Under the pieces are notes generated by a model. The model was given only the letters and a program-made list of their open reading frames with translations, ran no database searches and had not been told where the DNA came from. This document shows, one piece after another, positions 4,043-36,104 of a DNA stretch of 45,619 nt. This DNA is from Ginglymostoma cirratum. Lineage: Eukaryota. The position numbers were made by a program, and so were the translations under genes. Each line of letters opens with the position of its first letter. Positions within the stretch are counted from its first letter, which is position 1. The stretch covers positions 2,529,488 through 2,575,106 of the forward strand of contig JAHRHZ010000085.1 of NCBI GenBank assembly GCA_024137785.1, given 5' to 3'.

Positions 4043-4185
4043 GTACATTGCAGATCATATGTGTAAAGTATCAGTTCATTCGTCATAATGAGTTGATTTG
4101 GAGATGATGTTGACAATTGCTTTGTGTTATTTTCATCCAGAATGGTTTAAATGAATGGTAATTCAGTCTCAATGTTACTTTTCAG

Positions 4186-4314: not shown

Positions 4315-5139
4315 ATTGGGCAAATGAAAGGAGGCTTAAAAGATAGAAGCAGAGATTGCATCACAGAGGTGTCATGTTTCTTATCAATTTTAAGCTGTTA
4401 TTTTCCTCATGTACGTCTGTCGTAAGGTTGCAAAACTGTACATTAATTTCTTCGCTTCATGTAATGTCACCTGGATCCATTTCATTTCACCTTGAAAATT
4501 CATGCAACCGTTACAACTAACAATCTCAATTCAGTTATTTCCAACTGGTAAGGTTCTACGTAGTCTCTTTCAAGCTGCACGAAGTTCGACCTATTCAACA
4601 TTAAAATTATTATTAAGTATTTTTCTGTTGTGGTTGTATATCAGCAGATCTTTATATTTCCACCTGTATTGGTAACATGATATTTTCATTCCCTTTCTGC
4701 AGTCACTGCATTTTGACCTCGAAATGATGGGCTTTACCGTGACAAATGTTCACAAGGTTTCTGTTGGTTAATTGTCTTTAACTTGTTTTTGTTTCACTTT
4801 TTCTGGCATGAATTGATAGTTCATTCTGCTTCCATTGTGGCAGTAGTTTTAATGCTGTTTGTCCTCTTGCTGTTATTATGACAATGGTCGTGTTGATTCT
4901 TAAATATCCAAAAGGCTGAAGAGATCCAATTGCTAATCTGCCTAATATTTTGATGGTTCATTTTGCTCAGTTAATTTGCTTAAATTAATAATTGGCAGTT
5001 TCTTCTTCAAATTTTAATTCAATGTAGAGTGGCACTGTGCCCACACAGAGCAGACCATTCTTGATCCCCCATTGTTTAGCATTGCACTCTCATTGTAATA
5101 TGATATAGTAGGACGAGATGGAATGGCTCGTGAATGGAA

Positions 5140-12972: not shown

Positions 12973-13668
12973 GATGTTGGCTGGGAAAACGTCAGTTTAT
13001 ATGCAGAAAATAGGGAGGTGGGTGGGGTCGGGAGTAAATGATAGGATAGAGCCCAAAGAGAGAGAAAGACAGTTGGACAGACAAAGGAGTTGCTAATGAT
13101 CAGACTGGGAGGGTGAATAGATGTTAATGAGGACAGTTAGTGACTAACAACAGGGGGTGTGTAGTGGCAGGCTATGTGGTAACAAGGCCTGGTGTGCAGG
13201 GTTGGGGGCTGGGACATGGGAGAGTTTCGGCCATAAAATTATTGAACTCAACATTGAGTCCGGAGTGCTGTGGGTTCCACAAGCGGAAAATGAGGTGTTG
13301 TTCGTCCAGCTTGCTGGGGAAGGTGCCGTGGGGCTGTGGGGAGGAGTTGGGGGTGAAAGAAGTATGGACCAGGGTTTCCTGGAGGGAAGGGTCCCTGCGG
13401 AAGGCAGACAAGTGAAGCCGGGGAGGGGGGGAGGTGTGGAATATGTGTCTGGTGGTGGCATCTTGAGGGAGGTGGCAGAAGTGGAGTCTGATGATCTTCT
13501 GGATGTGGATGCTGGTGGGATGGGAGGTGATGATAAGGGGAACCCTATCGCTATTGCGGGAGGGAAGAGGAGGGGTGAGGACAGAAGTGCAGGAGATGGG
13601 TTGGACCCGATTGAGGGCCCTGTCGACAACGGAGCTGGGGAATCCTTGGTTAAGGAAGAACGTGGACA

Positions 13669-13813
13669 TTTTGGAGGCTCCCTTGTCAAAGTTGGCCTCA
13701 TCTGAACATATGCAACGGAGTTTTCGGAGGCTCCCTTGTCAAAGTTGGCTTTATCCGAACACATGTGATGGAGTTTTCGGAGGCTCCCTTGTCGAAGTTG
13801 GCCTCATCTGAAC
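13669..13813. repeat. Three tandem ~52-53 bp units at the 5' junction of the Penelope copy
   Basis: tttt(c)ggaggctcccttgtc(a/g)aagttggc... units start at 13669, 13721 and 13774. Confidence 0.9.
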
Positions 13814-16545
13814 TTATCCAGGGGTGGGATGAGGCTAGTAGGTAGGCGATGGGGCTGGGGCTTGAGGTGGGATGAGGGGATAGGTGGAAGGAATGACAGG
13901 TCAGGGAGGCAGGGACAAGCTCGGCTGGTTTTGGGATGCGGTAGGGGGAGGGGAGATTTTGAAGCTTGTGAAGTCCACATTGATACCATTGGGCTGCAGG
14001 GTTCCCATTGAAATGTGAGGTGCTGTTCCTGCAACCTTCGTGTGACACTGCAGGAGGCCAAGGATGGACATGTTGTCTAAGGAATGGGAGGGGGAGTTGA
14101 AATGGTTCGTGACTGGGAGGTGCACTCGTTTGTTGAGAACCGAGCTTAGGAGTTGCGGGAGATATGGTCGAGGGCGTGCTTGACCACCGAGGGGGGAAGT
14201 TGAGGTCCTTGGAAAACAAGGACATCTGAGATGTTTGGGAGTGGAATGCCTCATCCTGGGAGCAGATGCGGCAGAGGCTAAGGAATTGGGAATCGGGGAT
14301 GGCATTTTTGCAGGAAGGTGGGTGGGAGGAGGTGTACTCTAGGTATCTGTGGGAGTCGGTAGGCTTAAAATGAATATCGGTTTCCAGGTGGTTGCCAGAG
14401 ATGGAAACAGAGAGGTCCAGAAAGGAACTGTTCGAGCTCCTTGCGGGAGCACGAGGCAGCGCCGATACAGTCATCGATGTAACGGAGGAAGAGGTGGAGT
14501 TTCGGGCCAGTGTAGCTATGGAAGAGGGATTGTTCCACGTAACCTACAAAGAGGCAGGAATAGCTTGGGCCCATGTGGGTACCCATGGCCACCCCCTTTG
14601 TCTGTAGTAAGTGGGAGGAATTGAAAGAGAAGTTGTTCAGGGTGAGGACAAGTTCAGCTAAGCAGATGAGGGTGTCAGTGGAGGGGGACCGGTCGGGCCT
14701 GCGGGACAGGAAGAAGCGGAGGGCCTTTAGGCAATCTGCATGGGGAATGCAGGTGTATAGGGACTGGACGTCCATGGTAGAGAAGATGTTTGGGGACCAG
14801 GGAATCAGAAGTTTTGGAGGAGGTGGAGGGTGTGGGTTGTGTCACGGGCATATGTAGGGAGTTGCCGGACCAAGGGGGAGAACATGGAGTCAAGGTAAGT
14901 AGAGAGAAGTTCGGTGGGGCAGGAGCAGGCGGAGACAATGGGTTGACCAGGGCAGTCAGGTTTGTGGATTTTGGAGAGGACATAGAAATAGGCAGTGCGG
15001 GATTGGAGAATGATGAGGTTGGAAGCTGTGGGTGGTAGGTTATCTGAGGTGACGATGTTGTGGATGGTTTGGGAGATGATGGTTTGGTGGTCCCGGGTGG
15101 GGTCATGATCAAGGGGGCGGGAGGAGGAGGTGTCAGAGAGCTGGTGTCTGGCTTCGGTGATGTAGAGGTCAGTGCGCCATACTACAACTGTGCCTCCCTT
15201 GTCTGCGGGTTTTATGGTGAGGTTGGGATTGGAGCGGAGGTCACGGAGGGCTGCACGTTCTGAGGGGGAGAGGTTGGAGTGGCTGAGAGGGGTGGAGAGG
15301 TGGAGGTGATTGATGTCACGACAGCAGTTGGAGATGAAGAGGTCAAGGGAGGGTCGGAGGCCTTGGGGTGGTGTCCAGGAGGAGGGGGTGTGTTGGAGGC
15401 GGCAGAAGGTGTCAGTAGAGGCAGGGTTAGGCTCACGGTTAAAGAAGTAAGCGTGGAGGTGGAGGCAGTGGAAAAAATGTTCAACGTTCAAGCGTGAGCG
15501 GTATTCGTTGATGTGTGGCTGGAGGGGGACAAAGGTGAGCCCTTTACTGAGGACTGATCGTTCGTCCTCAGTAAGGGGGAGTTCTGGGGGGATGGTGAAG
15601 ACTCGGCAGGGCTGGATGCTACTGTCTCCTCTGGAGCTGCTGGCTGTGGAGGCAGTGGGCGGAGTGACATCGGCAGTGGGCGGAGCGATGCTGGCAGTGG
15701 TCCGTGCGGCGTCGGCGGTGGCCATGCAGCATCGGCGGTGGGCAATGCGGGGTAGGTGGTGGGAGGAGCGGAGTCTGTCAGCAAGACCTGGATGTTGGCT
15801 GTGGCGGCAGCAGCGGTGTCAGCAGGTGTGTCTTTGATGTCTGTGGTGTTGGCCTTGGAAATGGAGGCGGCGGCGTTGATGGCGTTCGCTGTACCGGAAG
15901 TGGCGTACATGGCGGCGGCAGATGTGACGTCATCCGTGGTTGCTCTGATGGTGGGCACATGGCCAATGGCGGCGGGCACATTGTGGGTAGGTCCTGGTTA
16001 GGGTTGGGGATTTGGGGGTTGGAGGAGGCCTGTATTGGGTTGCAGGCACCAGTAAGTTTACTGTACTTACGGTTTTTAGTATCCAATAAAGCCTAGTGGA
16101 ATTGTGAGTTCAGGTTGTGGATCCTGCGAAGAATTAAAAACAGGAGAGGCCCTTTGCAGGTCTGGGAGAGGGAGGCTCTGAGCTGGGGTAGGCTTGATTG
16201 TAGTACCAGGAGATGCTGGCAAATTGCTGTGAGTGTATGTTTCCGGAGTCGCAGGGAGAAACATTTTTGAAGGATCTCAATGTCCTGAATATAGCGGTTG
16301 TCGCAGTTGGGGCCAAATTGGGAAGGCCTAAATGTGGATAGTAATCCATTGGGGATGATCCGGTTCCGTCGGCAGATACTAAGAAAGGTAATGTGGCTGG
16401 TTTGCTTCAGGACGTGGTCGAGCAGTTTCGGGGCCAAAGAGATTACGAGAGAGTTGCAGTGGGAGAGAGATCCACTGAGGTCTTTCCGGAGGGAGGAGGG
16501 TAACTTCATCAAGGTAGGCATCCTTAGAAGAGGCTTCACAGTGGG
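13814..16545 (-). mobile_element. Near full-length degenerate Penelope-like element (family 2): RT and partial GIY-YIG region
   Basis: LSKGLTFVP, IKPADKGG, KIHKPDCPGQPIVS, MDVQSLYT, QTKGVAMGTHMGPSY, RYIDDCIG, FKPTDSHRYL; frameshifts and internal deletions. Confidence 0.92.
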
Positions 16546-18305: not shown

Positions 18306-20367
18306 TTCACTTACATATCAATATTACAGCTGATTGTCTGTATCCATTTGAGCATACCTGTTCTGAGATCATAACATGTATTTATTTATAAGTGAAATAC
18401 CTCTCAAGAAAATAATGATAGATTGGATTGGTGCAATATGCTTTGTAATATGGTCCAGAATAAAAAATGTTTCACGAAATTCTGGCTGAAATGTTACCCA
18501 GAAAGTAGCACTTCATGGGGAAGCTACATTAATCATACCATCACTTTTGAAAAGAATTATCTTATGTTTTAAGACTTATTTAAACATATACTTAAATGGG
18601 TGCTTCTAAAGTAAATCCACTCGTTTCTCTCATTTCACTTCTATCATTACTGCATTATATTTTTCTTATACAGAGACATCAAGAGTTTTTTTTTAAAGTA
18701 AAAACAACAGATTCCTTGGGCCTATACATCTTAACACGGAACACAGGTAAAACAATTCTGACGTTTGAAAAGTAAAACAATGGATTATCAGAAATTGAAT
18801 TGGTAAAATTATATCTGCAAAGATAAATAACAAAATAGTCAGGAAAGTTCTACGAGTTAGTTAAGAGTACAGAGTCCACTATACTGAAGTACTTGATATT
18901 ATTGAGATTGGAAGCAGATATGACAATGGACACCTTATCAATACTAAATTGTGAGATGTGATAACTGGTGCAAATTAAGGGTGCACGAGATTAGCAAGTT
19001 GCTACAGCAGTTGTGATGATCCCAGCTGATGTTGTTTTATAACCAGATAAATCAGAAACCAGTTAGGAGTCTGGTTGATAGATCATAGTTTTATTTGTTT
19101 GGTTTAAACAGTGTTATCTTATGAAAACAAAAGCACACTGTCCTGCAGGTTTTGCTTTATCAACAAAGCAAATGCATTACAAAAGAGCAAAGATATAATA
19201 GAATAAACAAAACTATAAACTTCCATACAAATTCAAAGACTATAAGCGCACAGTAAAATGTATTATCCATTAATCACAAAACACACCTCTATAAATTGAT
19301 AACAACAAAATTAGCTTTTAAGTAGTATCCAAAACATAATGCCAGTGAAGCTCTCAACACATCTTTCAAATAATATTATGATGATAGGTTTAAGCTAATT
19401 GACACAACAAATTTTCGACTGGAACAATGATTGCTTCTTCCTGGCCTGTAAACAAACCTGAGCTTCTCTGAACCACTGCAAGTCGGATTTTTTGGTTGTC
19501 CCAACAGTTCTGTTTCTGGACTAACAAGAACTCTACACTTCAAGGTAATCTCATTCACTTCATCTATCAGTCCCTGCTTCTGAACATTTCACAATACATC
19601 TATCCTTTTCCAAGAACTTCACAGGACTTCACTACTCAAGGCTCTCTCTCAGTAATGTTACATTTCCCTGAGTGTTAAGCAAACCAACTTCCACTACTCT
19701 CTAACAAACATTTGATACTCCATTATTAACCTTCCTATCTTGCAAGAAATCTATGACTAGCAAAAGTCCACAAGTCACAGAATTGAAACCCCTCAGAGCC
19801 GTGCTTTGTAAATTGTTTTAGAAAAGCAATTGCCTGGTAACAAAATAATTACAAGTTAATTATTAACATCAGATACAGCGGTTGTAGGGTAGGTGGTGGG
19901 AAGCTAGTTCGTAACACAAAACCAGTAACTCAAGCTCACACTAAATATTATACATGTAAATCCAACAGGAAAAGCGTAGCACTGAATAAAGAATAACTTG
20001 AGTGGAAACAAATACCAGATCAATTTATCCAAATAACACAAAGCATGACATTAGCTTTGTTTGCAATGAAACTATCAACAGATCATCTTCAAATTATGTC
20101 TGATGAGAGCATGAAACCGGAGTAACTGCTGGACTCCAGAAATACAAAATGAAAATGAAGATTATAAACATTAAATGTTCTTGACTTGTCAAGGTGCATA
20201 TTTCTGAGATGCTGCAAGAGGTTTTGCAGGAATGTACTTTGTTGAAAAGGTGGGTTCTCAAGATTGAAACATTGGTAGAAACATTGGATGGATAGGGCAC
20301 ATCTATTTGCTACCTGCACTTTAAGAGTCATGTTTGAGCAGAAAATATTGCCAATTAATGAAATCAA

Positions 20368-20755
20368 GGAAGCTTTAGCATAGTGGTCATGTCAATGAAG
20401 TGGAAATTCAGTGACCCAGACCAATTTTCTGAGAACATGGGTTAGAATTCCTCCATTGCAGAAGGGAAAACCTGATTGCAATTTGAGAATTTGGAATTGA
20501 AAGTTAGTCTCATAGTGACCAAGTATCACTCATGACTTTTGTGAAAAAAAAGGGATTATTAACGCCCATGACAAAAGAAAATGTGCTATCCTCACCAGCT
20601 CTGACCTGAATGTGATTCAAGACCCAAAGTCATGTGGTTGACTCTAAACGGCTCTCTGAACTGTCCTCGTAAACCACTCAGTTAAAGTGCAATTAGGAAC
20701 GGACAATTAATGCTGGCCCAGCCAATGACACCAGCATCCAATGAACAAATTAAAA
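20368..20755 (+). mobile_element. Old tRNA-derived SINE
   Basis: Head similar to 9745-9870 and to the reverse complement of 11085-11435; ends with the atgctggcccagccaatgacaccagcatcc tail. Confidence 0.6.
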
Positions 20756-21376
20756 CAAAGTATTATAGCCAATTATCAATTGGGCCTATTTAGCTTCACA
20801 GAAGAGAAACAAATGACAAATACTTTTACAGAACGTGGTTAAAGTGGAATGACACAGAACTAATAAAATCAGAGCTATTGCTTGAATTATCGTGGATTGA
20901 ACCAATTTAAATCAAAAAAATGCAATGAAACATGAACAAACTAAAAAGAATAAAACAATGAAAAACTGATATATATTTGGCACAGTTAGAACTATCCTAC
21001 ACTGAAAAAAATAAATAGAAATCAAAATATCAGTATTTTCACAATGTCACTAACAGTGAAATGGTGAAAAAAAAGGTGGTATAAGAGTTTTCAGAAAGCT
21101 ATTAGAAAACAACGATACTTATTACGCATAACATAGTGGTGAGTTCAAGAGAATGAAGAGTTTAACAGTTAGAATGAAGCCAGTTGCTATCTTAAATGGT
21201 ACAGCAAGTTTGTAGGCAAAACAGAGTTGATTCTTGAAATATTAAAGGAAGAAAAACCTCAACAACTATTTTTTGAAACCAATTAAAGACCACGAAAAGC
21301 ACTGCACCAGACAGAAAAGGATTGAAAACACCCATGATACCAATATCACTTGACTTTTGTCTGAGTATCATTATAT

Positions 21377-21505
21377 TTAGCTGCTGGCTTTCACTGCTGC
21401 ATACAATGGAGTTGCAGCTGTGTGTTCTGGCTTCATTGTTAACCTGGGACCATTCAAATTCAGAGCAGCATAAGTCAGCTGGCATTTGTTCGTGCTCTGT
21501 TTGGT
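21377..21505 (-). CDS. Gene B exon 7: terminal cytoplasmic exon
   Basis: ttttacag|; TKQSTNKCQLTYAALNLNGPRLTMKPEHTAATPLYAAVKASS*. Confidence 0.88.
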   Translation of the reverse strand, partial: TKQSTNKCQLTYAALNLNGPRLTMKPEHTAATPLYAAVKASS

Positions 21506-24500
21506 CTGTAAAACAACAGTGAAAGTAGTTCATTATTGTTTCAAATTTCACTAAAAGTTAAGAATTCTTCAATGTTAGCTCAAAACCAACTGATTGTAAT
21601 TAAGAAAATGGTTACTTTATTCATACATATGAACAGAGAGATACCTCTGCATATACTGTTCTTTCATCCTGTGGCTGAGGATTTCTAGCATCCTTTGAAT
21701 GGACCAGTTCAAGATCAGCATACGTTAATCTGTCTTCAGTGCTTTCTTGTTTTCTCTGGAAAATTGAGGTTTAACATTCATTAATTTCTATTTTCTGGAG
21801 CCAAGAATCAGTTTTCCATAGTCATCAATGGCAATTACTCTGTCTCTGTGAGTTTGCTATCTCTTTGTTACATTCTTAATAGTTTAAAGCTTCTCTATTC
21901 AATTCCTTTCTCTCCACTCGACATAAATGAAAGCTTCCTCTTTTGCTCATATGACCCTGCTTGCAAACAATGAAACTTCATGTTTGAGTGTGTTAAAACT
22001 TAGAAGAGGAACTCTGCTAAATTCAGTTTCCTGAGCAAAAAATTCAATTGGATTAATTCAATACGATCAATTTCAACATTCATATGGAATCCATTCAACA
22101 TTACATCCTGTAACAAGTTGAAGATGTGTACTTTCTAAATGGAATTGGTCTGAATTTCCTTTACAAAGATAAACAAACTTACTTAAATGCGTGTTTCTTC
22201 ATTTGGAAATAAAAGTACAAATTCAAACTGTGTGTAATAATTAAACTTTTGATTGGTGCATTAGTTCGTTTAAAACTGGCATTCCCTCATATTTTTTGCT
22301 TAATGCTTAAACTAATGAGTTAATTATACTCATACAAGCAATCGTTTATTGGTGAGTTGAATAGTGATGAAACAATGAGATCTCTATCGTTATTTCAATA
22401 GCACCATTTGAAGAATGACAAATGGGACAGTGAAGGTTTATTTCAGTGAAGACGATCTTGCAATCCAATTGCACAGAATCTTTTAGGTACTTAAGATGCC
22501 ATACATTTTACAGCAAATTGTTAATTTCTATCTGAAAATTTTTGTTCAGATAGAAACATGAGGCAACAGATTAATGGAGCGTGTGGTCATACAGAGAGCA
22601 ATGAAACAATTTAACGGATAAACAATGGTGTTCCTTTCAATCAAAGAACAAAATAAAAGAAGTCAATTTTGATTTACATATATGATCTCAGACTTTTTAT
22701 GCAATGGGCTTTATCATTGGGAATGTTTCATTCTTTTCTGATCTGCACCTCTGCACCTGAGTCAGTGAAACACAGGATTTCATAACCTGACAAGACCAGG
22801 GGAAATGAAGGTAAGCATTAGCAAAGCTTAGAATCATGTTGACGATGACAAATTCAAGGGCAGTCCATTCAATGCATGTATTACTTGCAACAAGTAAATG
22901 ATTAAAAAGAAATAAATAGAGATGAATGGCTGTGGTGTAATTGACATTACAAACACATCACTGCAGGATAATCGGGAGAAGTGATTTTTCAATAATGTTC
23001 AATGACATTTAGGATGGAAAAAGGAAAAGAAGATCTGTTAGTATCATGCGAGTAGTAATGGGTGGGATCAGTGAATAAGGATCTCAGATTGGAATAACAA
23101 AATGAGGAATCTTCTGTGGTGGAGCTAAGGAACAGCAAGCGGCAGGAAACATTGGCAGTTGTTTACAAGCCACAAACAGTTGTAGTAATGTGAAACATAG
23201 ATAAATAAAACGATTTGTGATGTGTGGTACATAGCTTTTGCAACAATCATGACTGGATTCGATCTCGATAAAGGCTCAACAAACTAATGAGCACAAAAGC
23301 TGTGAAGGATGAGTTTTTGAGTGTGTTAGGGATAGTTTTCTGGAGCAGTATGTTGAGGAACAGATTAGAGAAATGTGTCCATCTCATAACGTCACGAAAA
23401 GTAGTTATTTAACAATATTGTTGTAAGAGAATCTTGAAACATGAGTGACTGTACAGTGATGGAATTATTCATGAAAAGTATCACAGTTGCATTTGTAATA
23501 CATTAAATCATGTCTTTTGACATGTTCTTTTTATATTACTGGCTCAGTTGTACTTTTGTCAAGGAAGAAAAACAGAAGGCTGGATGAACACAGCAAGCCA
23601 GGCAGCATCTGGAGGAAAGGAGAAGTCAACGCTTCGGGTATTACCCTTCTGCAGGACTGATGTGGTGGTAGGGGGAGCTACAGAAAAAATGGAGGGGGGA
23701 TGGGAGGGAAGCAGAATGGTGGTGATAGATGGATTTTGGTAGGAAGGGTGACTTGATTGTTCGATGGGAGAGATGAATCTGCTTGGTGGCTGGAAGGGAG
23801 GGTCAGAAGGTGGAATGAAACAGAGGAGATGGGGCTGGAAGGGAAGGTGGCAAATGGGTGGGAAGGTTATTTGAAATTGGAGAACTCAATGTTGAGTCCT
23901 CCAGGCTGTAGGGTGCCCAGGCGGAAGATAAGGTGTTGTTGTTCTGAGTTGCTGTGACACTGGAGGAGGCCGAGAACGGACATGTCTGAGGGGGTTGGGG
24001 GGGTGGTGAGTAGAAATGTACAGCGACCAGGAGACTAGGCTCGCCATTACAGGCCAGGCGAAGATGTTTGGCGAAACGATCACCTGGTCTATGTTTAGTC
24101 ACACCGATGTATAGAAGACCACATCAGGTGCACCAGATGCAATAGACCAGGTTGGAGGAGATGCAGGTAAATCTCTGTCTCACCTGGAAGGACTGTTTAC
24201 AGCCCTGGATAGAGGTGAGGGAGGTGGTGTGTGGGCTTTGTGTCTTTTATGGTTACAGGGCAAGGTAATGGACAGGTTGGACTGGTTGGTTGGGAGTGTG
24301 GCACGAACTAAGGAGTTGCAAAGGGAATGGTCCTTGTGGAAGGCAGAGAGAGGTGGGGAGTGGAAGATGTTCTGGGTGGTGGGGGCTATTTGCAGTTGGT
24401 GGAAGTGTTTGAGGATGATACATTGGATGCGGAGGCTGGTGGGGTGCAAAGTGAGGACAAGGGGGACCCTCTCTTTATTATGTTTGGGGAGGGGCAGTGC

Positions 24501-27500
24501 TTAAGAGCTGTTGAGTGGAGAATGGAGGAGGTGTAATGGAGGGCTATCTGGATGTCAGAGAGGGGAAAAGAGCATTGTTTGAAAAAGGCGGACATCCCAG
24601 ATGCTTGGGAGTAGACCTTGTGAGACCAGATGTGATGAACATGAAGGAATTATGAAAAAGGGATGGTGTTTTTGCAGGATACAGGGTGGGAGGATGTGTA
24701 ATACAGGTAGCTATGAGAGTCTGTGGGTCGAGAGTAAATGTCGGTCCATAAATTGTTGCCAGAAATGGAAACAGAGAGATCAAGAAAGGGAAGGGAGGTG
24801 TCTGAGATACACCAAGGGAATTTGAGGGTAGGGTGGAAGTTGTTAGTGAAATCAATGAACTGCTCCAGTTCACCCTGGGTGCAGGATGCAGCCCTGATGC
24901 TGTCATCGATGTAACAGCAGAAGATTTGGGAAACGAGACCGATGTACGTACTGAAGAGGGGCTATTCAACAAATAGGCAGGCACAGTTGTAGCCCACGCG
25001 AGTGCACATGGCAAACCCCTGATTTGGAGAAAGTGGGAAGAATTGAAGGAAAAGTTAGTGAGGGTGAGGACCAGTTCAGCGAGATGGAGGAGGGTGTTGC
25101 TGGAGGGGAACTGAAGGGGTCTGTTGGAGAGGAAAAACCTGAGGGCCTGTAGGACGTACTTGTAGGGAATAGATGTGAAAAGGGATTGCACATCCATGGT
25201 AAAGATGAAGCACTAGGGGCCAGGGAGCTGGAAGTTTCCCAAGAGAATGGTTTGTGTCCCAGATGTAGGTGGGAAGTGCCTGGGCTCAAGGGGAGAAAAT
25301 GGTTTCGAAGTAGGTCAAGACAGTAAAACGTTTTGACTAAAGCATAGATTAAAGCATATTATTTTGATTGCAATGTCTGATTCATTCAGATGAATTTCAA
25401 AGCAAAGTTGATGACAAAAAGCCTTACCTCAACTTTGTGTTGAGTAGGATTTCTTACTTTTTCCTTTGAACCTGGTGACAATAAATTCAGCATTAATTGT
25501 CAAGAAAGATGCGATGTTTGCATTCGTCTGTAAGCCAACAAAATACCATGTAATTCAAATAGCCACGCAGTATAACAGGCAAATTGGATTCAGAATGTAA
25601 CTCAAAATGTTGAACACAAATGCACATATTTAGTTGTGCCTTGAAGCTGTGGAAATATTACTTCATCCGTGAAATTCACCGGACTGCCTTCGGATCTGTA
25701 AAGATATGATTTTGCATTATAAAGCTATGAACGTGAACATGTCATGCTACTGTTGAAGTGAAACAACTGCCTGCAAGTAGTTTCACATCATATATTTATT
25801 TTAACTGGACTAGTCAGATTTCATTACCCAATTATGTGAAATTCAGGTTGTTTAATCAATACTTGAATGGAAGTTATTTCATTTAGTATATATATATTCC
25901 TATTCGTACCTTTAGTTATTCTTAAGAGAAGACACTTCACAATCATCACTGCGCATAATAGAATTACAAGTGCTCCAATGGCAGATCCAGCAACAAGAGG
26001 AACAATACTTTTTGAGGCAATATCTATTAGATGGACATAAAACTAAAATTAGAAATTGTATTGGAAAGCAGAGACATATAAATTTAAATATGACATGCTT
26101 CATTTCCCATGAAGCCACCTTGCTAGTATTCTAATACTGTTCACTACATCTCACATATCAACTTCTCCAGTCAGTTTTCCTATATGCAATCGGATATAAC
26201 GAGGGAAAATCATAGGAATCTGGGGAAATTACAGTAATGATGAAGAAATTTGAATCGTCATCTTATAATTAATCGAAATGAAGACAATGCATGTATCCAA
26301 CACCAGCAATATTCAATTGTAAAGAGTACAGAACAGAGAGCAGTGATCATCGGACAACATTCTTCGAGATTCACTTTGGAACATAAAGTCATTGACACCA
26401 TTTTAAACAACATTTTTCTCCATGTGTAACCAATCTAACTGTTGAGGGGAGACAATTACATAGTTACAGTGTACTTGGCTGACAATACAGAGCTTGAAGC
26501 TCTTGGCTCTTGGATTTTTATGCCACCAGTGCAGAAGGTGACACTTGAATTCATTAAAAACCTGGAATGGTGTTCATGTCAAAAACACTGGTCTCCTTGC
26601 TACAGGAAAAGTGTTGTTAAACGTGAAAGGGTTCTGCGAAGATTTACAACGATGTTGCCAGGGTTGAAGGGTTTGAGCGAATGGGAGAAAGGCTGAGTCG
26701 GCTGGTCCTTTTTTCTCTGGAGCATCGGAGGTTGAGGGGTGAATTTATAGAGGCTTTAATAGTCACAAGGCCATGGATAGGGTGAATAGCCAATGCCTTT
26801 TCCCCCAGGGTAGGGGAATCAAAACTGGAGGGCATAGGTTTAAGGTGAGAGGGGAAAGATTTAAAAGGGACCCAAGGTGCAACTTTTTCACGCAGAAGGT
26901 TGTGCATGTTTGGAATGAGCTGCCAGAGAAGTGGTAGAGTCTGGTACAATTACAACATTCAAAAGGCACCTGGAAAGGTGTATAAATAGAAAGTGTTTGG
27001 AGGGATATGTACCAAATGCTAGCAAATGTGACTAGATTAATTTAGGATATCTGTAATGATTCTGGTGTAATGACCATCTCTATGACTCTAAGACCAGATA
27101 GTTTACTTCATGTCCTTTTGGAAGTCATTCTGCCATCATTAATTGGCCTTCATGTGACTCATTGCATATTGGATGGTTTTAACTGCTGTCTAGGCAATTA
27201 CATATCAACAATAAATGTTCCCCAGTAAATAACACATTCAATGAATTCAAAAAGAATGTTTAGTAATATGATGAATAGGGAAATTCACTGTGCTCTGCAT
27301 TGCTTTCTCAATGTATGTGAAGATATTCAATCGATTTTAAAAGAAATAGCGACACAAGGGACTGCTCAATGAATAGCAAGACACCAGGAAGCTCACAGGA
27401 TCAGGAAGATCTTGGAACTTTCCTTCACAGATCACTGAACGTGGCAGGGCAAGTTAATAGGATGGTTAAGAAACGTACAGAGCATATGCTTTTATCTGGA

Positions 27501-30500
27501 ATGGTATTGATTATGAGAGGAGAGAGGTTACACTGGAGTTTTACAGGACTTTAGTTAGCTCACAGTGGGAGTACTGTGTGCAGTTCTAGTCGCCACAGGA
27601 GAGCAAGGTGTGGCATTGGGCTTAAAGATATCTCCGAAATAGACCATTGGAGTGATTCATTAGGTTAATTGGACATGACAATGTGCAGTTGAGGACATGT
27701 GGAAAAGTACAAGGTTACTGCAAAACAGCCTCTTTTGGCTTGGAGCGACACATAATATTGTGCAGTGAAAAAGGAACCACCTTGAAAGTGTTCTCAGCCT
27801 GTTTTTGTCCAGTGGGCTGCGTGGGAAAGAGCTGAAAATACGACAAAAGAGTGAAGCAGCGTGTAACATGAGATTCAGAACAGGTGTAATATCGGGGACT
27901 TTGCACCACCCATTGGACTTTCACTGTTGGGCGTGAGACAGGTGCTGCGGAACTGGAGACAGAGCTCGAAGTACCGCCATCACCAAAGTTCCCGGGGAGC
28001 GGAAAGGCAGTGTGAAACTCACATGTTGAATATATATCTCAGTAGGTTAACGTCACCAGTAAGCTTTAATATATATATGTGTAGTGTAAACGAACAGTTG
28101 TAATTCAGTTATGTAAAGTATTATAACCCAATAAATTATATGTATATTGAAGTACATTAGTAATCATTTTGACCAGAATTTAAAGAGGCAGTTACTTTGG
28201 CTGTTGAAGCATTCTGTGTCCCCGGATGGTCCTGTAATAGAGATAGTAGGAACTGCAGATGCTGGAGAATCTGAGATAACAAGGTGTAGAGCTGGATGAA
28301 TACAGCAGGCCAAGCAGCATCAGAGGAGGGTAAGGGTGACGTTTCGGGCCTAGACCCTTCCAAAACAAGAGCGTTAACCACATGGGGTGGATCCTGCTGA
28401 GCAGCCTCCCGTCTGCTGCCCCGGGAGGTACGAGATTTAAAGGAGGCGACCGGGACATTGACCGCTGGGCTGGCGAGGGCGGCTCGGACCACTCAGGAAA
28501 GAGCAAATAAAGCCAAGTAGAAGCAGACCAGTACAGCCTGCAACAAAAACAAAAAGTACTGGGAATCACAGGGGGTCAGGCAGGATCCATGGAGAGAGAG
28601 AGCGAACGTTTCGGGTCAAGACGACCATTCATCAGAGCTGGTGAAGCCTGGAGGGGGCAGCATTTATACAACTGTAGGGGGTGGGAGGGAGGGGAGCGGA
28701 AGTGCTCGGGGAGAAAGGGTGTTGACAGAGCAGATTAAGTGATCGGAATGTGAGAAGGGCAGAATATTGGTGTGTCTAACTGCCGGGCTGGTAAGAACTG
28801 ACAGTCAAACTGTAAAACCTGCAACAAAAACAAAGTTGCTGGAAAAGCTCAGCAGGCCTGGCATCGTCTGTGAGGGAGGAAACAGAGTTAACGTTTCGGC
28901 CCGTTGTCGACAGGACCCTCAATCGGGTCCGACCCATCTCCTGCACTTCTGCTCTCACCCCTTCACTTCCCTCCCGCAACAGCGAGAGGGTTCCCCTTAT
29001 CCTCAACTACCATCCCACTAGCATCCACATCCAAAAGATCATCAGATGCCATTTCCGCCACCTCCAGCAAAATGTCACCACCAGACATATATTTCTCTCC
29101 CCTCCCTTGTCATCCTTCCGCAGGGACAGTTCCCTCCGGGACACCCTGGTCCATACTTCCTTCACCCCCAACATCTCCCCACAGCCCGACGGCACCTTCC
29201 CCTGTAACCGGCGAAGGTGCAACACCTGCGCATTTACCTCCTCCCTCCACAGTATCCAAGGGCCCAAACATACCTACCAAGTGAAGCAACACTTCACCTG
29301 CACTTCCAAGAATCTAGTCTAGTGCATTCGCTGCTCACACTGTGGTCTCCTCTACATTGGGGAAACGAAGCATAGACTTGGTGACCGCTTCACAGAACAA
29401 ATACGTTCTGCTCGCAAAAAAGACCCTGAACGACCTGTTGCTTGCCACTTCAATGCACCATCCTGCTCCTTAGCCAACATCTCTGTCTCCGGCTTGCTAC
29501 GGTGTTCCAGTGAAGCCCAGCGCAAGCTGAAGGAACAACACCTCATTTTCCGCTTGGGGACACGACAGCCCTCCGGACTCAATATTGAGTTCAATAATTT
29601 TAGGGCCTAAACTCGCCAATGTCCCAGCCCCCCCACCCCACACACCAGGCCTTGTTACCACATAGCCTGCCATTGCACACAAGCTGTTGTTAGTCACTAA
29701 CAGCCCCCATTAACAACTATTCCCCCTCCCAGCCTGATCGTTAGCAACTCCTTTGTCTGTCCAACTGTCTTTCTCTCTCTTTGGGCTCTATCCTATCGTT
29801 TACTCCCTACCCCACCCACCTCCCTATTTTCTGCATATAAACTGACGTTTCCCAGCCACCATCAGTTCTGAGGAAGGGTCACTGGACCCGAAATGTTAAC
29901 TCTGTTTTCTCCTCCACAGATGCCGCTAGACCTGCTGAGCTTTTGCAGCAACTTTGTTTTTGTTAACTTTTCGTGTCCAGTGAGCCTTCGTCAGAACTGT
30001 CCCTTAGAACCGGGGTTGAAAACTCATTGACCCCTCCCATGGTGTGAGACCCCAATTCTGATTTAGATGCTTCTTCTCAGAAAAAAAAGGATATGTCAGA
30101 GTTTCTTCTGTACCCAACATGAGAGGAACTGGAGCAGATGTGGAGAGTGAGTAATCCCCTCGACTCGGAAGGTAGCTGGGCCACTGAGATGTGACTAATA
30201 GTGGGAATCGACTCAGGGGTCCAGAGGCAATACATCTCTAGCAGAATTCATTGGAGAAATGGAAATAAAGAGCACATTGTGCTCGATACCTTCCAGAAAT
30301 CTGTGAACTAAAATGACTATGAATAGATTTGAGAGAGCAGAACCACCGGCGCTTTGAGCACTGGTGTGATTGGCAAAGGGGAATAGGCCACCGCGGATGG
30401 TGTCTGTGTTAATATGCAGCGTAAACAAAAATATTGTCGGGATGGATGTTGTTAGGGGATAGAAATATGGACCCCAACTGGAAAGTCTTGTTTTGGTGAA

Positions 30501-33500
30501 TGAAGGATGAATGCAGTAATTGGGAAAGCTAATTGGGACTCCAATACATTCCATTCATTCACGAATTGTTAACGGTAAGCAGTATTGAGGGCACAAGGAG
30601 ATCACAGACGCTATTGAAGGGTCAGTGACAGCAAGGGTTGTATGACCTGCTGTCTTCCCGTATAACTGCCTTGTGTGGTCAGTACAGAAACCAGGTGGTA
30701 ACTGGAGAATGACGGTAGATGACTGACGGTTAAGCCAACATACCCCAGCATTGGCATTGGCTCTCCCAGAGATTGTAACATTACCGGAGCAACTGTCATT
30801 GGAAACTGATGAATGGTTTGCCGGAATCTACCTCCCTAATACTTTCATTTCCTTGATGGGAATTCACAGAATCAGTTCGCTTTCACACAAGAGGGCAGAG
30901 AGCACACAGTTTGTAGGTTGTGCGGGGCTACTTGCACATTCCAATTCTCTGCCATGGTTTAATAGCCAGGATCTGGAGATGTCCCCTCTCTCCAGCGATA
31001 TAACATCCCCTTATATTGATGATGTATTGCTACATGGCCCTTCAGAGGAAACAATAGCCGAAGACATAGCTACTTTGACTCAGGGCGTACGGAATAAAGG
31101 CTGGGCAATTAATTCTAAAGAAATCCAGGGACCAAGCCGGTGTGTTATTTTTCTGAGAATAAAATGGGCCGGGGAGAAGGTGTGATTCCTGACAAAGTGA
31201 GAAATAAAATCAGTGAGTTGCAAGTCCGGACCGCGAAGGAAATGGCCCAAAGATTTATAGCGATGTGAGGTTATTGAAGAAGGCATGTCCCTCACTTAAT
31301 CTAATTACACCTCACCTCTGAACTGGTTTCTTCCTGTGACTTTGAGGCACAGCTCCTGAGAGCGATGTTGCCTGGCAGTGGCTCATATGCTGGGTGATTC
31401 GCCGCTGTGACAAAATGCGAAAGAGATAAAGGGCCACAAACCGTCTTGGGGATTATTATGGTGAGCCATGAATTCAGCTCCATTAAATTCTATAGTTTCT
31501 CCATCTTCAATACTGGTATGACACCTGCACTCCAAACCGAATATTGTTTTAACTGTGACAGTGGAGACAACTAATGGAAATAAATAACCTTCCCATTGCC
31601 GCTCGGGAGACACACGATAAACATTACAAAGCCGAGGCAGGAGAAATGCACTCGTCACTATTCTAAGTAGAGCAGAGGCGGGAAACGTTGTGTGAACTTC
31701 CATGGGTATTGACACTATATAAAATAGAATTGCTAAAGCTGGGCAAGTAACTAAGAAGACTATTAAACTACTTGTTGTGTGGCCAAACCATTAACCCATT
31801 GAGATTTGGCAAATAGGTTTTTGACTGATAAAGTGCGGAAGTTTGCGAGTAGCAACATTTTGGAAATGTATTACACCCAGATAAATCTTAGTGCTGAAGC
31901 TAACTGAATACATTGTAATCTGCTCGAGCTGTATATTTTAGCACAATGATGTCAAAATAACCAATACATTGCTGTCCTGATACCTGTTGTCTTGGAGACA
32001 AACATTTCACCTCACCATTAAGAACTTAACATTTATGCCTGATTTGTTAAGTGGTCATTACGCTGTCACAGTATGTCATGCTATCTTTAAAAAAAACAGA
32101 ACATAGCAGCAAATATAGCAGCAAGTCTATCACCCTACCCCATCTGTCTTGGATATGCCACGGACACCCGTGTATTGTGAGAAACGGCTGGACAGCAACA
32201 ATTAAACCCACCGGAAACAATAGCCAGAAGCCTGGTGTGCCCCTTATATTTCCCTACCTTTGAAACATGATACAATCGTCTAAGAAATTGGCCTGAACTA
32301 CAAACTTGTTTCCAGCACTCATATTGTCTACCTCAATGATAAGAGAGAGGAACAATCTGCCAATCTACTTCGGGACAAAACATATTATCTGTGAGGAAAT
32401 GAGACATAAACACCATATAATCAAAGAATGAGAGGCGATAATTGCAAGCTCTCCTTGCCAATCATCAACAGATTATTTCTCACTTGGAAACAGTACACCA
32501 GGGCTTCTTGCATCAAGAAACTGCCATGACTAACAGCCAGGACCTATTGATTCGCAAAGCAGGCAATTTAGGAACCCTGACCATGCATCATTAGTGGGTC
32601 ATATTTAACAGGTAGACACCAAAAGCTTCAGCAGTCCGCTCACAGCGACAGTATCCAATTGTTTATATTATTTTTAATTGCTCGTTTCTTGTTTTTCTGT
32701 ACCTGTGTAAAGGCCTGAAAACTATATTGTGTGTATATCCAAATTGTAGCTACTGAGCGGCATGTACATGCTTGTATAGTGTTTTGATTATCTAGTTTGA
32801 AGACATCAATGGACGTCGTGTCGTGTGAGCTTAAAAATGACCACCAAATCAAACCATTCAGTGTTAATCATTCAGGGTTAATTGGGCATGAAAATTAGCA
32901 ATTGAAGACAAGTGGAAAATGACAGGTTCAGAGTAAAATCTGCCTTCATTGGCTGGGAGGTAACTGCATGAACTTGGCTGGGTGGGAAACAGAATAATGT
33001 GCAGTGAAAAAGGGACCATCCGGAAGATTTTTTTTCCAGCTTGTTTTCCGTACAGTGGAATACCAGGAAACATACTGTAAGTACTATGAAATGGTGCTAT
33101 ACCATGTAACAGTTGATTCAGAACAGTATTAACATTGGGGACTTTGCCCCAGTCATTGGACTTTCACCGTTGGGCTGGAGTCGGTGAGACGAGCACCGTG
33201 GAATCTGAGATAGAGTTCCAACTGCTGTCATCGCCAAAGTCCCCGTCGAGTCCGAAAGGCAGTATGAGAATCACATGTTTAACATATATCTGAGTAGTTT
33301 AACCTAACCATTTCACTTTAATATACATCCACAATTTAAAAGGTCAACTATAAATTCATATAAATACGAAGTATGAACCAAATAAATTAGCAATACAATG
33401 AATGCACATGTCTTCTTGTAATCATTTCAATCAGACCTTAAAGTAATCGGTTAGAGTCTTACGGTCCAACAATACGGAAAGATTTGATTGCACTGGGGAG

Positions 33501-36104
33501 GGTACAGAAGAGATTCACCAGGATGCTGTCTGGTTTGGAACATATTAGCTGTGATGTTTCTGGAGGAGCACGAACTGTTTTCTTTGGAGCAGAAAAGGTT
33601 GTGGGGAGCCCTGATTGAGGTGTATACGATTATGAAGGCATGGACAGGGTGGATTAAAAGCAACTGTTCTCTTTAGTTTAAGGGTGAATAAGAGAGGGCA
33701 TAATTTGTGCAGGGAAAAGCAAGAGGCTTTCAGCGAAATTGAGGATTGATTTTTTTTCACCAAGAGGGTGTTGAGTAAAAGGAATGCACTGCCTGGGATT
33801 GTAGTGCAGGTTGGAAAGCTTTAACAAATGTCCATGGACGAGCACGTCAAATGTCTTTCCATTCAAGTCTATGAGCAAAGTGTTGGAAAGTGTGATTAGT
33901 GTAAAGAGGTGGGATGCACCCAATGGACCAAAGGGCTTTTTCTGTGCTGTGTAACCTGATCATGTCTCTCTCGCAGACGGTAAGGACTGTAGATGCTGGA
34001 AGCTGCAATCAATAAATGTGGAGCTGGAAAAACACAGCAGGTCAGACAGCACGCGAGAAGCGGGAAAGTCATCGTTTCCGGCCGAAACCTTTCGAGCGTT
34101 TGCCCTTCCACATTTGTTGATATTCCTCCCCATTCACGTTGCCCCTTTATAACATTTCCAGTTTTTGAATTTAACACTGAACTTATCTTCGGAAATGAAT
34201 TGTAACATTGTGTATTTAATCTAAGTTATTGGACCTCTCCATGACGAATATCCATTATTGGCTGTATGCAATGTGACAATATACTGCACATGTTCGGAAT
34301 AAGCTGAAGAAAATAAACCTTTAACCAGATAATGCCAAATTTATGGATTGACACAATTAAAGGCAGTTGACTGTAGTACTCACTTTCGACTTTGTCAACC
34401 TTTTAAAACAATATCTGAAAGATTAATGTACACCGTGTCATACAATCTTACCTTCTTTTGTAACAGTGTAGCTGGCATTAACTGGAAATGTGATCGAAAC
34501 GTGATGTACTTGACACATGTAGACTGTGTCACTTTCGGGTATATTTGGCACGTCCAAGGAGCTGACCACTTCATAAAGTCCGTCACCTTTTGCCTGTTTT
34601 ACATCTCTAAATCCAGTGAAGATTTGTGCACCGTTTCTGTGCCAAGTAAGGTTATAGTCTTCTGGATAAAAGCCAGATGTCCTGCATTGCAGCTTGAAAG
34701 GAGCAGATGAAGTGTTTTCAGAACGTATTGATACAAGTTTTAGAGGAGCTGGTGAAGCTGCATAGTAAATAACAACATTTAAATGAATGTGGACATTACA
34801 CTTCTACTCCAAAACTTAAACTGTTTATTGAACTAGCCAACTCCTACTTATCCGTGTGGCAGCTGCATTGATCGTCATTATTTCCACTGGTAGGGGTTGC
34901 TATGACTATTATCATGCAGCGATCTTCTAATGCAATTGATACATCACTTTTATGTTCCGCAAAATTGGATACAACGCTGTGTCTATATTAATTAATACAA
35001 ATATGTTTGAGTTTTCATACTGTACCCTCCTTGCATTCAGCAGCTTGGCAACTGGATCACAAAAAATGAGGAGAACGGGAATTTGGCTTTTCAAAGTTGA
35101 AAATAAAATGACATTTAAAGTGCTTAATATTGCTGAAAACCTCCAGGCAATTCACTCTGTTACTCCATGCTTAAATCGTAAAAAGTGCTTCACTTGGAAG
35201 TCTTACATTAGCTTTCAATGCAACACAAATTCCAATACCATTTGCTGATAGAGTGCAATTGCTGAAATGTGTGGTGTCCCTGATGATCCTTTGTTTTTGT
35301 TTCCATATTATTGACCATGTTGTTCCAAAGAAGTGAATGATTTATATTCACTTATATTTAAGAAAATGTAATTGCTAACTCACGTTCACTGTCCATTGGA
35401 ACTAAGGCCTAACGTTTACTGTGGTACCACTAACCGTAGACAACAAGTTGCGCAGCGTGTTTGTCATCAACCGTTCTGTGCTGATTTTTGGCTACGCAGT
35501 AATATATTCCAGCATCCAGGACAGTCACATTGAAGAGATGAAGGTATGCTCTACGTTTCATGACTTTGAAGAGCTTTTTGCTGTCTTCCTTGAGAAGCAT
35601 CTTATTATCTTCCCGCCACCAGAAAACCGTTATGTTTGCAAGGTCGAGTTCGAAGGAGAAATCGCATCGCAGGATCGCTGTTGTATTTGTCAGGGCCTTT
35701 GTTTGCATAATATCCAGAGGAGCATTGTCCAAAGTGCACACAGCAACTGTTAACAAAAGAAATATACCCTGATTAATTCGGGAAGTTGGACTGCACCATG
35801 AAATAACATAATTAATCCAATACATTCAAACAGGAGCAATTTAGCATGTCTTGCTTTTTAAATTCTGCTCCACTATCTGAATTTATGCCCGAACTGTACT
35901 GTTTTCACTTATCAAGAGGATTCGTAGGACAAGCAAAACTGATGTGAAAGACATGCGTTAAAAGTCTCCGATTATCCGTCAAATGTCAGTTCAATTGTTC
36001 TTCTGTCTTGATAAAGAACATTTCAAACACTGCCAGAAGAAACCTGTACCTGGATATGAAAGATACAACAAACATAAGTTCCACAGTGATCCGCTCACAA
36101 ACAT
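21377..36104 (-). CDS. Gene B: complete SIRP-alpha-like inhibitory Ig receptor (leader-V-C1-TM-four-Tyr tail), 7 exons, 356 aa: join(36104-36050, 35746-35435, 34757-34452, 26023-25910, 25471-25428, 21755-21645, 21505-21377)
   Basis: All introns are GT-AG with compatible phases (1,1,1,1,0,0); exon lengths sum to 1071 nt with no internal stop; Ig and ITIM motifs are recognisable. Confidence 0.88.
21645..21755 (-). CDS. Gene B exon 6: cytoplasmic ITIM exon
   Basis: ttttccag|...|gtatct; RKQESTEDRLTYADLELVHSKDARNPQPQDERTVYAE. Confidence 0.9.
22950..23480 (+). mobile_element. Decayed CR1 endonuclease-region fragment
   Basis: Remnants ESSVVELRN..., FLSVLGDSFLEQYVEE. Confidence 0.5.
23568..25320 (-). 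mobile_element. Degenerate Penelope-like element (RT plus GIY-YIG plus tail)
   Basis: MDVQSLFTSIP, RYIDDSI, NLVYCIWCT.CGLLYIG.TKHRPGDRF; tail has agtc-ctgcaga-a-gggtaataccc-gaagcgtt-gact (mutated hammerhead, ~23623-23658). Confidence 0.88.
25428..25471 (-). CDS. Gene B exon 5: first cytoplasmic exon
   Basis: caccag|...GAG|gtaagg, 44 nt; (G)SKEKVRNPTQHKVE. Confidence 0.87.
25910..26023 (-). CDS. Gene B exon 4: transmembrane exon
   Basis: aatag|...AAAG|gtacga, 114 nt; (D)IASKSIVPLVAGSAIGALVILLCAVMIVKCLLLRITK; uncharged TM core. Confidence 0.9.
26580..27092 (+). mobile_element. CR1 LINE 3' end
   Basis: WSPCYRKSVVKRERVLRRFTTMLPGL...LFSLEHRRLRG...FFTQKVVHVWNELP. Confidence 0.85.
27360..27608 (+). 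mobile_element. CR1 fragment upstream of the ERV
   Basis: QEDLGTFLHRSL...TLVSSQWEYCVQF*SP; stops at the LTR start. Confidence 0.75.
27609..28196 (+). repeat. 5' LTR
   Basis: Starts with TG, AATAAA at ~28130, followed by tgg; aligns along its length with 32819-33455 (shared tgcagtgaaaa.ggaccac/t, ggggactttgc, cattggactttcac, ccaaagt.cc). Confidence 0.75.
28238..28362 (-). repeat. Penelope-tail short repeat
   Basis: Reverse complement of the element at 1-71; ends in a truncated hammerhead gaagggtctaggcccgaaacgtc. Confidence 0.75.
28537..28817 (-). mobile_element. Penelope-like 3' tail (another subfamily) with hammerhead motif
   Basis: Same layout as 12835-13140, with diverged sequence. Confidence 0.7.
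28601..28640 (-). ncRNA. Minimal hammerhead ribozyme motif
   Basis: agcu-CUGAUGA-au-GGUC-gucuu-GACC-c-GAAAC-GUU-cgcu: canonical CUGAUGA/GAAAC core and palindromic stem III. Confidence 0.65.
28818..29964 (+). mobile_element. 5'-truncated Penelope-like element (family 1): GIY-YIG endonuclease region flanked by inverted tail copies
   Basis: CNRRRCNTC...NLV*CIRCSHCGLLYIGETKHRLGDRF...EQHLIFRLGT; 28823-28899 is the imperfect reverse complement of 29888-29964. Confidence 0.92.
29864..29901 (+). ncRNA. Minimal type I hammerhead ribozyme motif
   Basis: AGUU-CUGAGGA-a-GGGUC-acug-GACCC-GAAA-uguu-AACU; stems I and II pair perfectly. Confidence 0.7.
32819..33455 (+). repeat. 3' LTR
   Basis: Diverged direct repeat of 27609-28196; AATAAA at ~33381. 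Confidence 0.75.
33456..33965 (+). mobile_element. CR1 3' part downstream of the ERV
   Basis: KDLIALGRVQKRFTRML...LFSLEQKRLWGALIEVY...; picks up roughly where the 27360-27608 fragment stops. Confidence 0.8.
33983..34095 (-). repeat. Penelope-tail short repeat
   Basis: actgtagatgctgga...acacagcaggtcagacagc...catcgtttccggccgaaaccttt, the same family as 28238-28362. Confidence 0.65.
34452..34757 (-). CDS. Gene B exon 3: Ig C1-set domain
   Basis: tgcag|...GAAG|gtaaga, 306 nt; (A)SPAPLKLVSIRSENTSSAPFKLQCRTSGFYPEDYNLTWHRNG...DGLYEVVSSL...TVYMCQVHHVS...; GFYP and YxCxVxH are C1 signatures. Confidence 0.93.
35435..35746 (-). CDS. Gene B exon 2: Ig V-type domain
   Basis: ttaacag|...TACG|gttagt, 312 nt; TAILRCDF...VFWWR...YLHLFNVTVLDAGIYYC. 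Confidence 0.93.
36050..36104 (-). CDS. Gene B exon 1: signal peptide
   Basis: ATG...CCAG|gtacag, 55 nt, phase 1; MFVSGSLWNLCLLYLSYP. Confidence 0.78.

Follow-up and report, generated by a model that had tools for sequence, protein, structure and literature searches.

We have analyzed a stretch of 45,619 nucleotides of the genome of the nurse shark, Ginglymostoma cirratum (assembly GCA_024137785.1, contig JAHRHZ010000085.1, positions 2,529,488 to 2,575,106; the window from here on), and found on its minus strand a gene of seven exons that runs from position 36104 to 21377. The gene is predicted to code for a protein of 356 amino acids with a split leader, one V-derived immunoglobulin (Ig) domain, one C1-set domain, a transmembrane segment and a tail with four tyrosine motifs. 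We consider it probable that the product is a functional type I membrane glycoprotein, a member of a cartilaginous-fish family of 'SIRP-like' V(J)-C1 receptors and apparently the orthologue of LOC125459911 of the zebra shark, Stegostoma tigrinum.

The seven exons have canonical AG acceptors and GT donors and none of them contains an in-frame internal stop. Their lengths (55, 312, 306, 114, 44, 111 and 129 nt) sum to 1071 nt, i.e., 356 codons and a TAA stop, with intron phases 1, 1, 1, 1, 0 and 0 and four split codons coding for V, A, D and G. Exon 1 (36104-36050) starts at the ATG at 36104 and carries the first part of the leader (MFVSGSLWNLCLLYLSYP, then one nucleotide), with the GT donor after 36050; this leader is similar to those of the paralogues P0160 and P0020. 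The end of the leader and the N-terminal Ig domain are found in exon 2 (35746-35435), and the single C1-set domain (Pfam PF07654) occupies exon 3 (34757-34452). Exon 4 (26023-25910) codes for a stalk and an uncharged transmembrane segment (IVPLVAGSAIGALVILLCAVMIV) followed by basic residues, and exon 5 (25471-25428), passing from phase 1 to phase 0, is a juxtamembrane exon ((G)SKEKVRNPTQHKVE). The tail is made of two units. In exon 6 (21755-21645) the immunoreceptor tyrosine-based inhibitory motif (ITIM) LTYADL (21728-21711) is followed 23 residues later by TVYAE (21659-21645), and in exon 7 (21505-21377) a second ITIM, LTYAAL (21478-21461), is followed 23 residues later by PLYAAV (21409-21392) and the TAA stop. 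The 3' untranslated region (UTR) runs below 21377, with the first AATAAA located 2.3 kb downstream, at 19095.

The enumeration of AG..GT pairs was indecisive for exon 5, which was fixed by its conservation with the intron (1380-1426) of the neighbouring paralogue, which occupies the left end of the window. It is the sole conserved block between the two matching introns, and it also matches the zebra shark orthologue (GSKEKVRNPTQHKVE vs. GSKEETRNPTKHKDE). The searches and the fold prediction described below were run on single exons or on database proteins, and the length of 356 residues comes from the summed exon lengths. The original prediction, made from the letters alone, had proposed a leader-V-C1-transmembrane protein of just this size with four tail motifs, and this model stands, all motifs being on the minus strand where they had been placed and the lengths summing correctly. 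Its 'V' label has to be qualified: the first domain is a V-derived Ig domain that falls under the Pfam V-set cut-off and scores better as ig or I-set.

Coverage by public sequencing runs was examined over one 6-kb stretch, from 20101 to 26100. The joints 25910>25471 (exons 4 and 5) and 25428>21755 (exons 5 and 6) are present in contigs of run X1, both with GT..AG ends on the minus strand and at depths of 11.5-12.7, and exon 6 itself is covered at a depth of 12.7. One of these contigs, of 226 letters, spans exon 4 and joins exon 5, with 86 further letters that lie off the examined stretch on the exon 3 side. Its match extends beyond the exon 4 acceptor by 2 nt, as expected because exon 3 likewise ends in AG. 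The region from 20148 to 21469, comprising 3' UTR and most of exon 7, is covered without a break at depths of 12-24; one contig ends exactly at the last base of exon 6 and another 36 nt inside exon 7. In X1, introns 4, 5 and 6 were at depth 0 outside repeats, which alone were covered. Because the introns are empty and the joints have GT..AG ends, we infer that run X1 is complementary DNA (cDNA). Transcript mapping to six junctions had been suggested as a check of the gene, and two of them, between exons 4 and 5 and between exons 5 and 6, are indeed joined at the predicted sites.

When the C1 exon was searched exhaustively with HMMER, 811 matches were obtained at E<=0.001 and 234 at E<=1e-10. 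All the full-length matches with the same order of parts (V, C1, transmembrane segment and tail) were chondrichthyan, from sharks, rays and chimaera. The best was the zebra shark LOC125459911 (P0157, 381 amino acids), with identities of 56% in the V domain, 81% in C1, 58% in the transmembrane segment and 65 and 67% in the two tail exons. The two sharks share the Ig Cys and Trp residues, the C1 hallmarks and both ITIMs, and the same domain order and lengths are found in P0157 and in P0020 (357 amino acids). The shark origin already suspected from the letters is therefore confirmed by the best match and by close relatives that are all chondrichthyan. The architecture typical of the family, i.e., a leader, one V-type exon, one C1 exon, a transmembrane exon, a short exon and two tail exons, is found complete in the nurse shark gene, which is alike exon for exon to the chondrichthyan 'PTPNS1-like/SIRP-beta-1-like' models such as LOC125459911 and XP_067905931.1 of Heterodontus francisci.

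Representatives of the family were seen in at least 15 chondrichthyan species, including members of Heterodontus, Stegostoma, Chiloscyllium, Hemiscyllium, Rhincodon, Scyliorhinus, Heptranchias, Cetorhinus, Carcharodon, Pristis, Hemitrygon, Mobula, Amblyraja and Callorhinchus. Most of the members that we looked up are named by NCBI 'tyrosine-protein phosphatase non-receptor type substrate 1-like', that is, SIRP-alpha-like. Other NCBI or UniProt names are 'signal-regulatory protein beta-1-like' and 'uncharacterized', and there are evident mislabels such as 'H-2 class II', 'tapasin-related', 'NCR3LG1-like' and 'titin-like' (fused arrays). Outside the chondrichthyans, the C1 matches with specific names were SIRP-like proteins of lungfish, coelacanth and alligator, the others being merely 'Ig-like'. 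The product of the window was not among the database matches, and as far as our searches show the gene model is new for the nurse shark genome. However, the family and the orthologue are already in public annotation, and the gene is one ordinary member of a large family; the 'checkpoint' receptor of the original prediction is no lone orthologue, this being one copy of a large set of paralogues. We found no paper describing the shark SIRP-like family in the literature searched.

The domain trees, which were built without Ig, T-cell receptor or major histocompatibility complex outgroups and are unrooted, agree with this placement. The chondrichthyan domains come together in a single clade of the C1 tree (98 by the SH-like approximate likelihood-ratio test, SH-aLRT), apart from the C1 domains of sarcopterygian SIRPs, and the nurse shark domain pairs with that of P0157 with a support of 100. 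In the V tree the same pair has a support of 96 and is found inside a subfamily clade (100) that contains both sharks and rays. The phylogenies that had been called for thus put the gene in the chondrichthyan family next to P0157, of which it is apparently the orthologue as judged by sequence, and keep its C1 clade separate from the sarcopterygian SIRP C1 domains. One model in this set, from the skate Amblyraja radiata (P0028), has a V-C1-C1 ectodomain like that of SIRP-alpha, and its doubled C1 could be either a lineage-specific duplication or an artefact of the gene model. The C1 domains of P0028 are almost the same in sequence and group as a pair in the tree, which suggests that a single C1 is the usual state of the family and that forms with two C1 domains arose separately. 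Another observation concerns the zebra shark members P0156 and P0160, which have identical V domains and different tails, one with the full four tyrosines and the other truncated and labelled SIRP-beta-1-like. From their sequences the two resemble paired receptors whose likeness would be due either to gene conversion or to a recent duplication.

The N-terminal domain is the most divergent part of the receptor. Against Pfam, exon 2 matched ig (E 1.4e-8) and I-set (E 1.9e-6), the V-set score being 23.7 bits, below the cut-off of 26. There are 56 residues between the Cys pair and three N-glycosylation sites, and the domain ends in KHAAQLVV, without the J-like G-x-G motif, both glycines being lost. 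In the family alignment most members end the V domain with GTG(S/T)xLx(V/I), J-like as in the first domain (D1) of SIRP, although the glycines are also lost in the three zebra shark members examined (P0157, P0156 and P0160). Because most relatives keep GTG(S/T)xLxV, the motif was lost in this lineage or subfamily. An AlphaFold model of exon 2, made with the family alignment, had a mean predicted local distance difference test (pLDDT) value of 84.5 and was I-set-like, with strands A', B, C, a minimal C', D, E, F and G and no C''. The nearest folds found with Foldseek and VIA-align were I-set domains in the first place (titin, NCAM and Dscam, with Z of about 12-13), practically tied with short V domains such as those of PD-L2, B7-H3 (29% identity, the highest, at Z 12.2 in VIA-align) and IgNAR V. 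The V domain of the whole family is 8-10 residues shorter than D1 of coelacanth or rodent SIRP in the C'-C'' region. The path from the gene to its orthologue P0157 was 0.58 in the V tree and 0.19 in the C1 tree, values by which V, the ligand-binding end, changes about three times faster than C1. Sequence and model together point to a fast-evolving, shortened derivative of a VJ-type domain, and the ligand and the mode of binding are probably different from those of SIRP-alpha and CD47.

The second domain is, on the contrary, a regular C1-set domain (PF07654, E 5.5e-12, 46.3 bits versus a cut-off of 21). Hatherley et al. described the C1 character of the D2 and D3 domains of SIRP-alpha by the motifs (F/Y)(F/Y/H)P and xVxH and by a spacing of 13 residues between the Cys of strand B and the Trp of strand C (PMC2785349). 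Exon 3 has all three hallmarks, FYP in the BC loop, C-QVHH after the Cys of strand F and the 13-residue spacing (RTSGFYPEDYNLT). A tblastn comparison of the C1 domain with the whole window found no second C1 or relic of one in the 8.4-kb intron that precedes the transmembrane exon. The scores of this domain were 16.5 bits against D2/D3 of rodent SIRP-alpha, 17-21 against human Ig constant domains (CH1 or CL), 33-40 against the C1 domains of lungfish SIRP and 46 against the first of the C1 domains of P0148, an Ig-like protein of a frog whose V is of the B7 style. By these scores it would be no nearer to rodent SIRP-alpha than to human Ig constant domains. The transmembrane segment, uncharged and followed by basic residues, is of the inhibitory rather than of the adaptor-binding type.

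The tail is where the similarity to SIRP-alpha is strongest. Exon 6 aligns with the tail of rodent SIRP-alpha with a local score of 67 that none of 2000 shuffled sequences reached (PEDTLTYADLDMVH in rodent SIRP-alpha vs. EDRLTYADLELVH here), and the match spans the whole unit of ITIM, spacer and YA. The longer comparison is PEDTLTYADLDMVHLSRAQPAPKPEPSFSEYA in the rodent protein (P0168) and EDRLTYADLELVHSKDARNPQPQDERTVYA in the nurse shark gene. A close match of SIRP-alpha to this string had been proposed in the original prediction, and the real rodent sequence confirms it. The tail of a lungfish SIRP-like protein aligns over the whole exon, from the KQ(D/E) start to YAE, with a score of 62, again reached by none of 2000 shuffles. 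Exons 6 and 7 are paralogous units with the same layout, and the arrangement of four motifs is common to the whole family; the tyrosines are spaced 23-14-23 here and 24-17-24 in rodent SIRP-alpha. By this sequence comparison the homology of the tail with those of lungfish and rodent SIRP-alpha is real. Both LTYADL and LTYAAL fit the ITIM consensus (I/V/L/S)-x-Y-x-x-(L/V/I), so that two ITIMs accompany an uncharged transmembrane segment, as in inhibitory receptors that bear such motifs. Reading through the donor of exon 6 (21630-21644, minus strand) would turn the second motif into TVYAEV, a canonical T-x-Y-x-x-V switch-type motif. The frame would then stop after six more codons and lose the second tail unit. 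X1 gave no coverage of that intron that could correspond to such a truncated isoform.

Compared with mammalian SIRP-alpha (PTPNS1/SHPS-1/CD172a), the nurse shark gene shares the split leader, the V-type domain followed by C1-set, the uncharged transmembrane segment and the four tyrosines in two units (ITIM, about 23-24 residues and YAx[VI]), including the sequence match EDxLTYADLxxVH. It differs in having one C1 domain instead of two, a V domain shorter in C'-C'' and without the G-x-G bulge, non-canonical second and fourth tyrosine motifs and many paralogues in a large multigene family. From the other chondrichthyan members the gene is set apart, together with P0157, P0156 and P0160, by the absence of the J-like glycines that most of the family keeps. 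When the family profile was compared with solved structures, the top V-C1 match was UrIg2 (109 bits), and SIRP-alpha (2wng, 94.9) scored above Fab light chains (82.5 at most) and CD276 (74). Neither these profile scores nor the scores of the single domains single out SIRP. UrIg and UrIg2, like the gene described here, are shark genes that do not rearrange; their leader is split, and a V-type domain contained in one exon is accompanied by C1-set domains. In UrIg2 the single VJ domain goes with nine C domains in the nurse shark and with eleven in the model of the epaulette shark, in a description where ITIMs and SIRPs are nowhere mentioned (PMC12227049). We rejected membership in this group on architecture, our gene having a single C1 followed by a transmembrane segment and a SIRP-type tail.

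The ectodomain could also derive from a B7/PD-L-like or another non-SIRP V-C1 lineage that acquired a SIRP-like tail by exon shuffling or by convergence, the 'SIRP-like' names being then a mislabel. The B7 ligands (PD-L1, B7-H3/CD276 and B7-H6) have the same V-C ectodomain, with a weak sequence similarity and a comparable fold similarity in the N-terminal domain. PD-L1, CD276 and CD86, and not SIRP, are among the best sequence matches of this V domain to solved structures, B7-H3 gives the highest identity among the neighbouring folds, and one ray member is labelled as similar to NCR3LG1 (B7-H6). The C1 scores go in the same direction, with the frog protein above the lungfish SIRPs and rodent SIRP-alpha level with human Ig. 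However, the shark family differs from the B7 ligands in its J-like motif, its true C1 hallmarks and its SIRP-type tail. The GTG(S/T)xLx(V/I) end kept by most members is that of SIRP D1, the C1 hallmarks are missing from domain 2 of CD80, and the family profile scores higher with SIRP-alpha than with CD276. Besides, a lungfish SIRP-like protein unites this type of C1 and the four-tyrosine tail in one molecule. An origin from the B7-like side is for these reasons unlikely.

The opposite possibility is that the gene is the true shark orthologue of SIRP-alpha. The homology of the tail over the whole ITIM-spacer-YA unit and the PTPNS1-like names that annotation pipelines gave to the relatives speak for it, and rodent SIRP-alpha was the sole non-chondrichthyan match (E 1.5e-11) of a word search made with the relative P0020. 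On the other hand, there are many paralogues, spread over at least 15 chondrichthyan species and with a second copy in the window itself, the chondrichthyan C1 clade is separate from that of the sarcopterygian SIRPs, and the V domain of the family is shorter than SIRP D1 in C'-C'', the G-x-G being moreover lost in this copy. The V domain of the nurse shark gene scores just 9.9 bits against D1 of rodent SIRP-alpha, and a V domain that evolves about three times faster than C1 is unlike a receptor tied to one conserved self ligand. We regard true orthology with SIRP-alpha as quite improbable, and the status of SIRP orthologue is not established. With one C1 instead of two, a short I-set-like first domain, the J-like motif lost and a C1 no closer to SIRP-alpha, the gene would not be a SIRP in the strict sense. 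What holds of the SIRP-like reading of the original prediction is the SIRP-type tail, together with the SIRP-alpha-like pipeline labels; the C1, no nearer to SIRP-alpha than to Ig, and the diverged V do not follow it.

It is well supported, at the level of sequence, that the nurse shark gene is a member of the cartilaginous-fish SIRP-like family and works in the manner of SIRP-alpha. The behaviour of SIRP-alpha, including its ligand, the Src-family kinases, SHP-1/SHP-2 and the damping of activation, has been summarised in PMC12975943. By analogy, the N-terminal domain of the shark receptor would engage a ligand, Src-family kinases would phosphorylate the tyrosines of the tail, the paired phosphotyrosines would dock the tandem SH2 domains of SHP-1/SHP-2, and the docked SHP-1/SHP-2 would damp the activation of the cell that bears the receptor. 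CD47 binding cannot be assumed because the N-terminal domain, by its sequence and model, appears short, I-set-like and J-less and differs from SIRP D1 in C'-C''.

Several points weigh against this picture. Recruitment of SHP-1/2 is read from the motifs by analogy, and of these only the first and third tyrosines fit the ITIM consensus, the second having Thr at +3 and the fourth Pro at -2. The orthology with P0157 comes from trees of about 100 columns made with a quick method. Run X1 has no RNA library type on record, the joint between exons 6 and 7 is absent from the X1 contigs listed for 20101-26100, and those between exons 1 and 2 and between exons 2 and 3 were not observed, being outside that stretch. 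Finally, a polyA RNA-seq run with the same species label (X19, a quarter of which was read) gave about one read, on the 3' UTR, so that expression of the gene in that sample is weak at best.

The rest of the window contains only family members and repeats. At its left end we found the 3' half of a convergent paralogue on the plus strand (838-4316), whose V and C1 exons lie before the start of the window. Its exons are one for the transmembrane segment (about 840-953, ASNISVTMAAGCAAGALAILILVAMIVK), a short one of 47 nt (about 1373-1419) and two for the tail, at 3932-4042 and 4186-4311, of which the second, the last of the gene, still has an open frame. The first of the two is interrupted by an in-frame TAA (4010-4012, following LTYAALNLVGSEDGIMP), because of which the paralogue keeps one ITIM only, and the tyrosine that comes after this premature stop is replaced by His (TGHAE). 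The paralogue resembles the zebra shark members P0156 and P0160. The alignment of 21375-21783 (minus) with 3904-4316 (plus), 64.7% identical over 419 nt, runs straight through exon 6, the intron and exon 7, so that the intron between the two tail units is homologous too. That the seven-exon gene is itself a silent or dying copy, with a frame open by chance in a decaying cluster, is highly improbable in spite of this damaged neighbour and of the almost complete absence of X19 reads, since the frame is open in each of its seven exons, the splice sites are intact, spliced X1 contigs are found at depths of 11-24, and the Ig Cys and Trp, the C1 hallmarks and both ITIMs are kept in the zebra shark orthologue.

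In the 17-kb spacer between the convergent receptor genes there is a reverse-transcriptase fragment (Pfam RVT_1, E 5.8e-13) at 7702-8154 on the plus strand, the only Pfam match among ten long open reading frames (ORFs) outside the gene. A block at 13144-16539 is rich in G+C (0.57 at 14001-16000), has a GC skew of +0.46 and contains several long ORFs in succession on the minus strand, the longest of 306 amino acids, without Pfam match, and a 53-nt tandem repeat (13669-13817); it may be a transposable element. Within intron 5, about 50 nt at 23577-23631 reach contig depths of thousands in X1 and X21, with loose ends at both sides, and have hundreds of reads in the polyA RNA run X19. This is a very abundant, transcribed dispersed repeat. 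A search of the whole window with Rfam gave no match at the gathering score.

To a family already annotated in many cartilaginous fishes, the gene described here contributes a clean model of seven exons that is supported in part by cDNA, a tail checked against real SIRP-alpha sequences and a subfamily without the J-like motif and with an I-set-like first domain. It also provides a concrete construct for SHP-1/2 binding and for a ligand search. The gene alone does not place CD47-SIRP 'self' signalling in sharks, because the family is large and its V domain divergent. The SIRP-type four-tyrosine signalling module itself is likely older than the split between cartilaginous and bony fishes, because a transcribed shark gene has a tail of this type. 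SIRPs are among the few non-rearranging proteins with V followed by C1 and have been discussed as relatives of the precursor of antigen receptors (PMC2785349). We tentatively propose, as a possibility on the weaker side, that the double tail of ITIM, 23 residues and YAxV was already joined to a VJ-C1 ectodomain with a single C1 in the ancestor of cartilaginous and bony fishes, and that the subfamily described here later dropped the J-type bulge, its V evolving about three times faster than its C1. If this were so, the shark family and the tetrapod SIRPs would be two surviving branches of an ancient inhibitory receptor, non-rearranging and shaped like an antigen receptor, and the loss of the bulge together with the fast V would point to a change of ligand or of binding mode, perhaps under pressure from pathogens, rather than to a conserved recognition of CD47.

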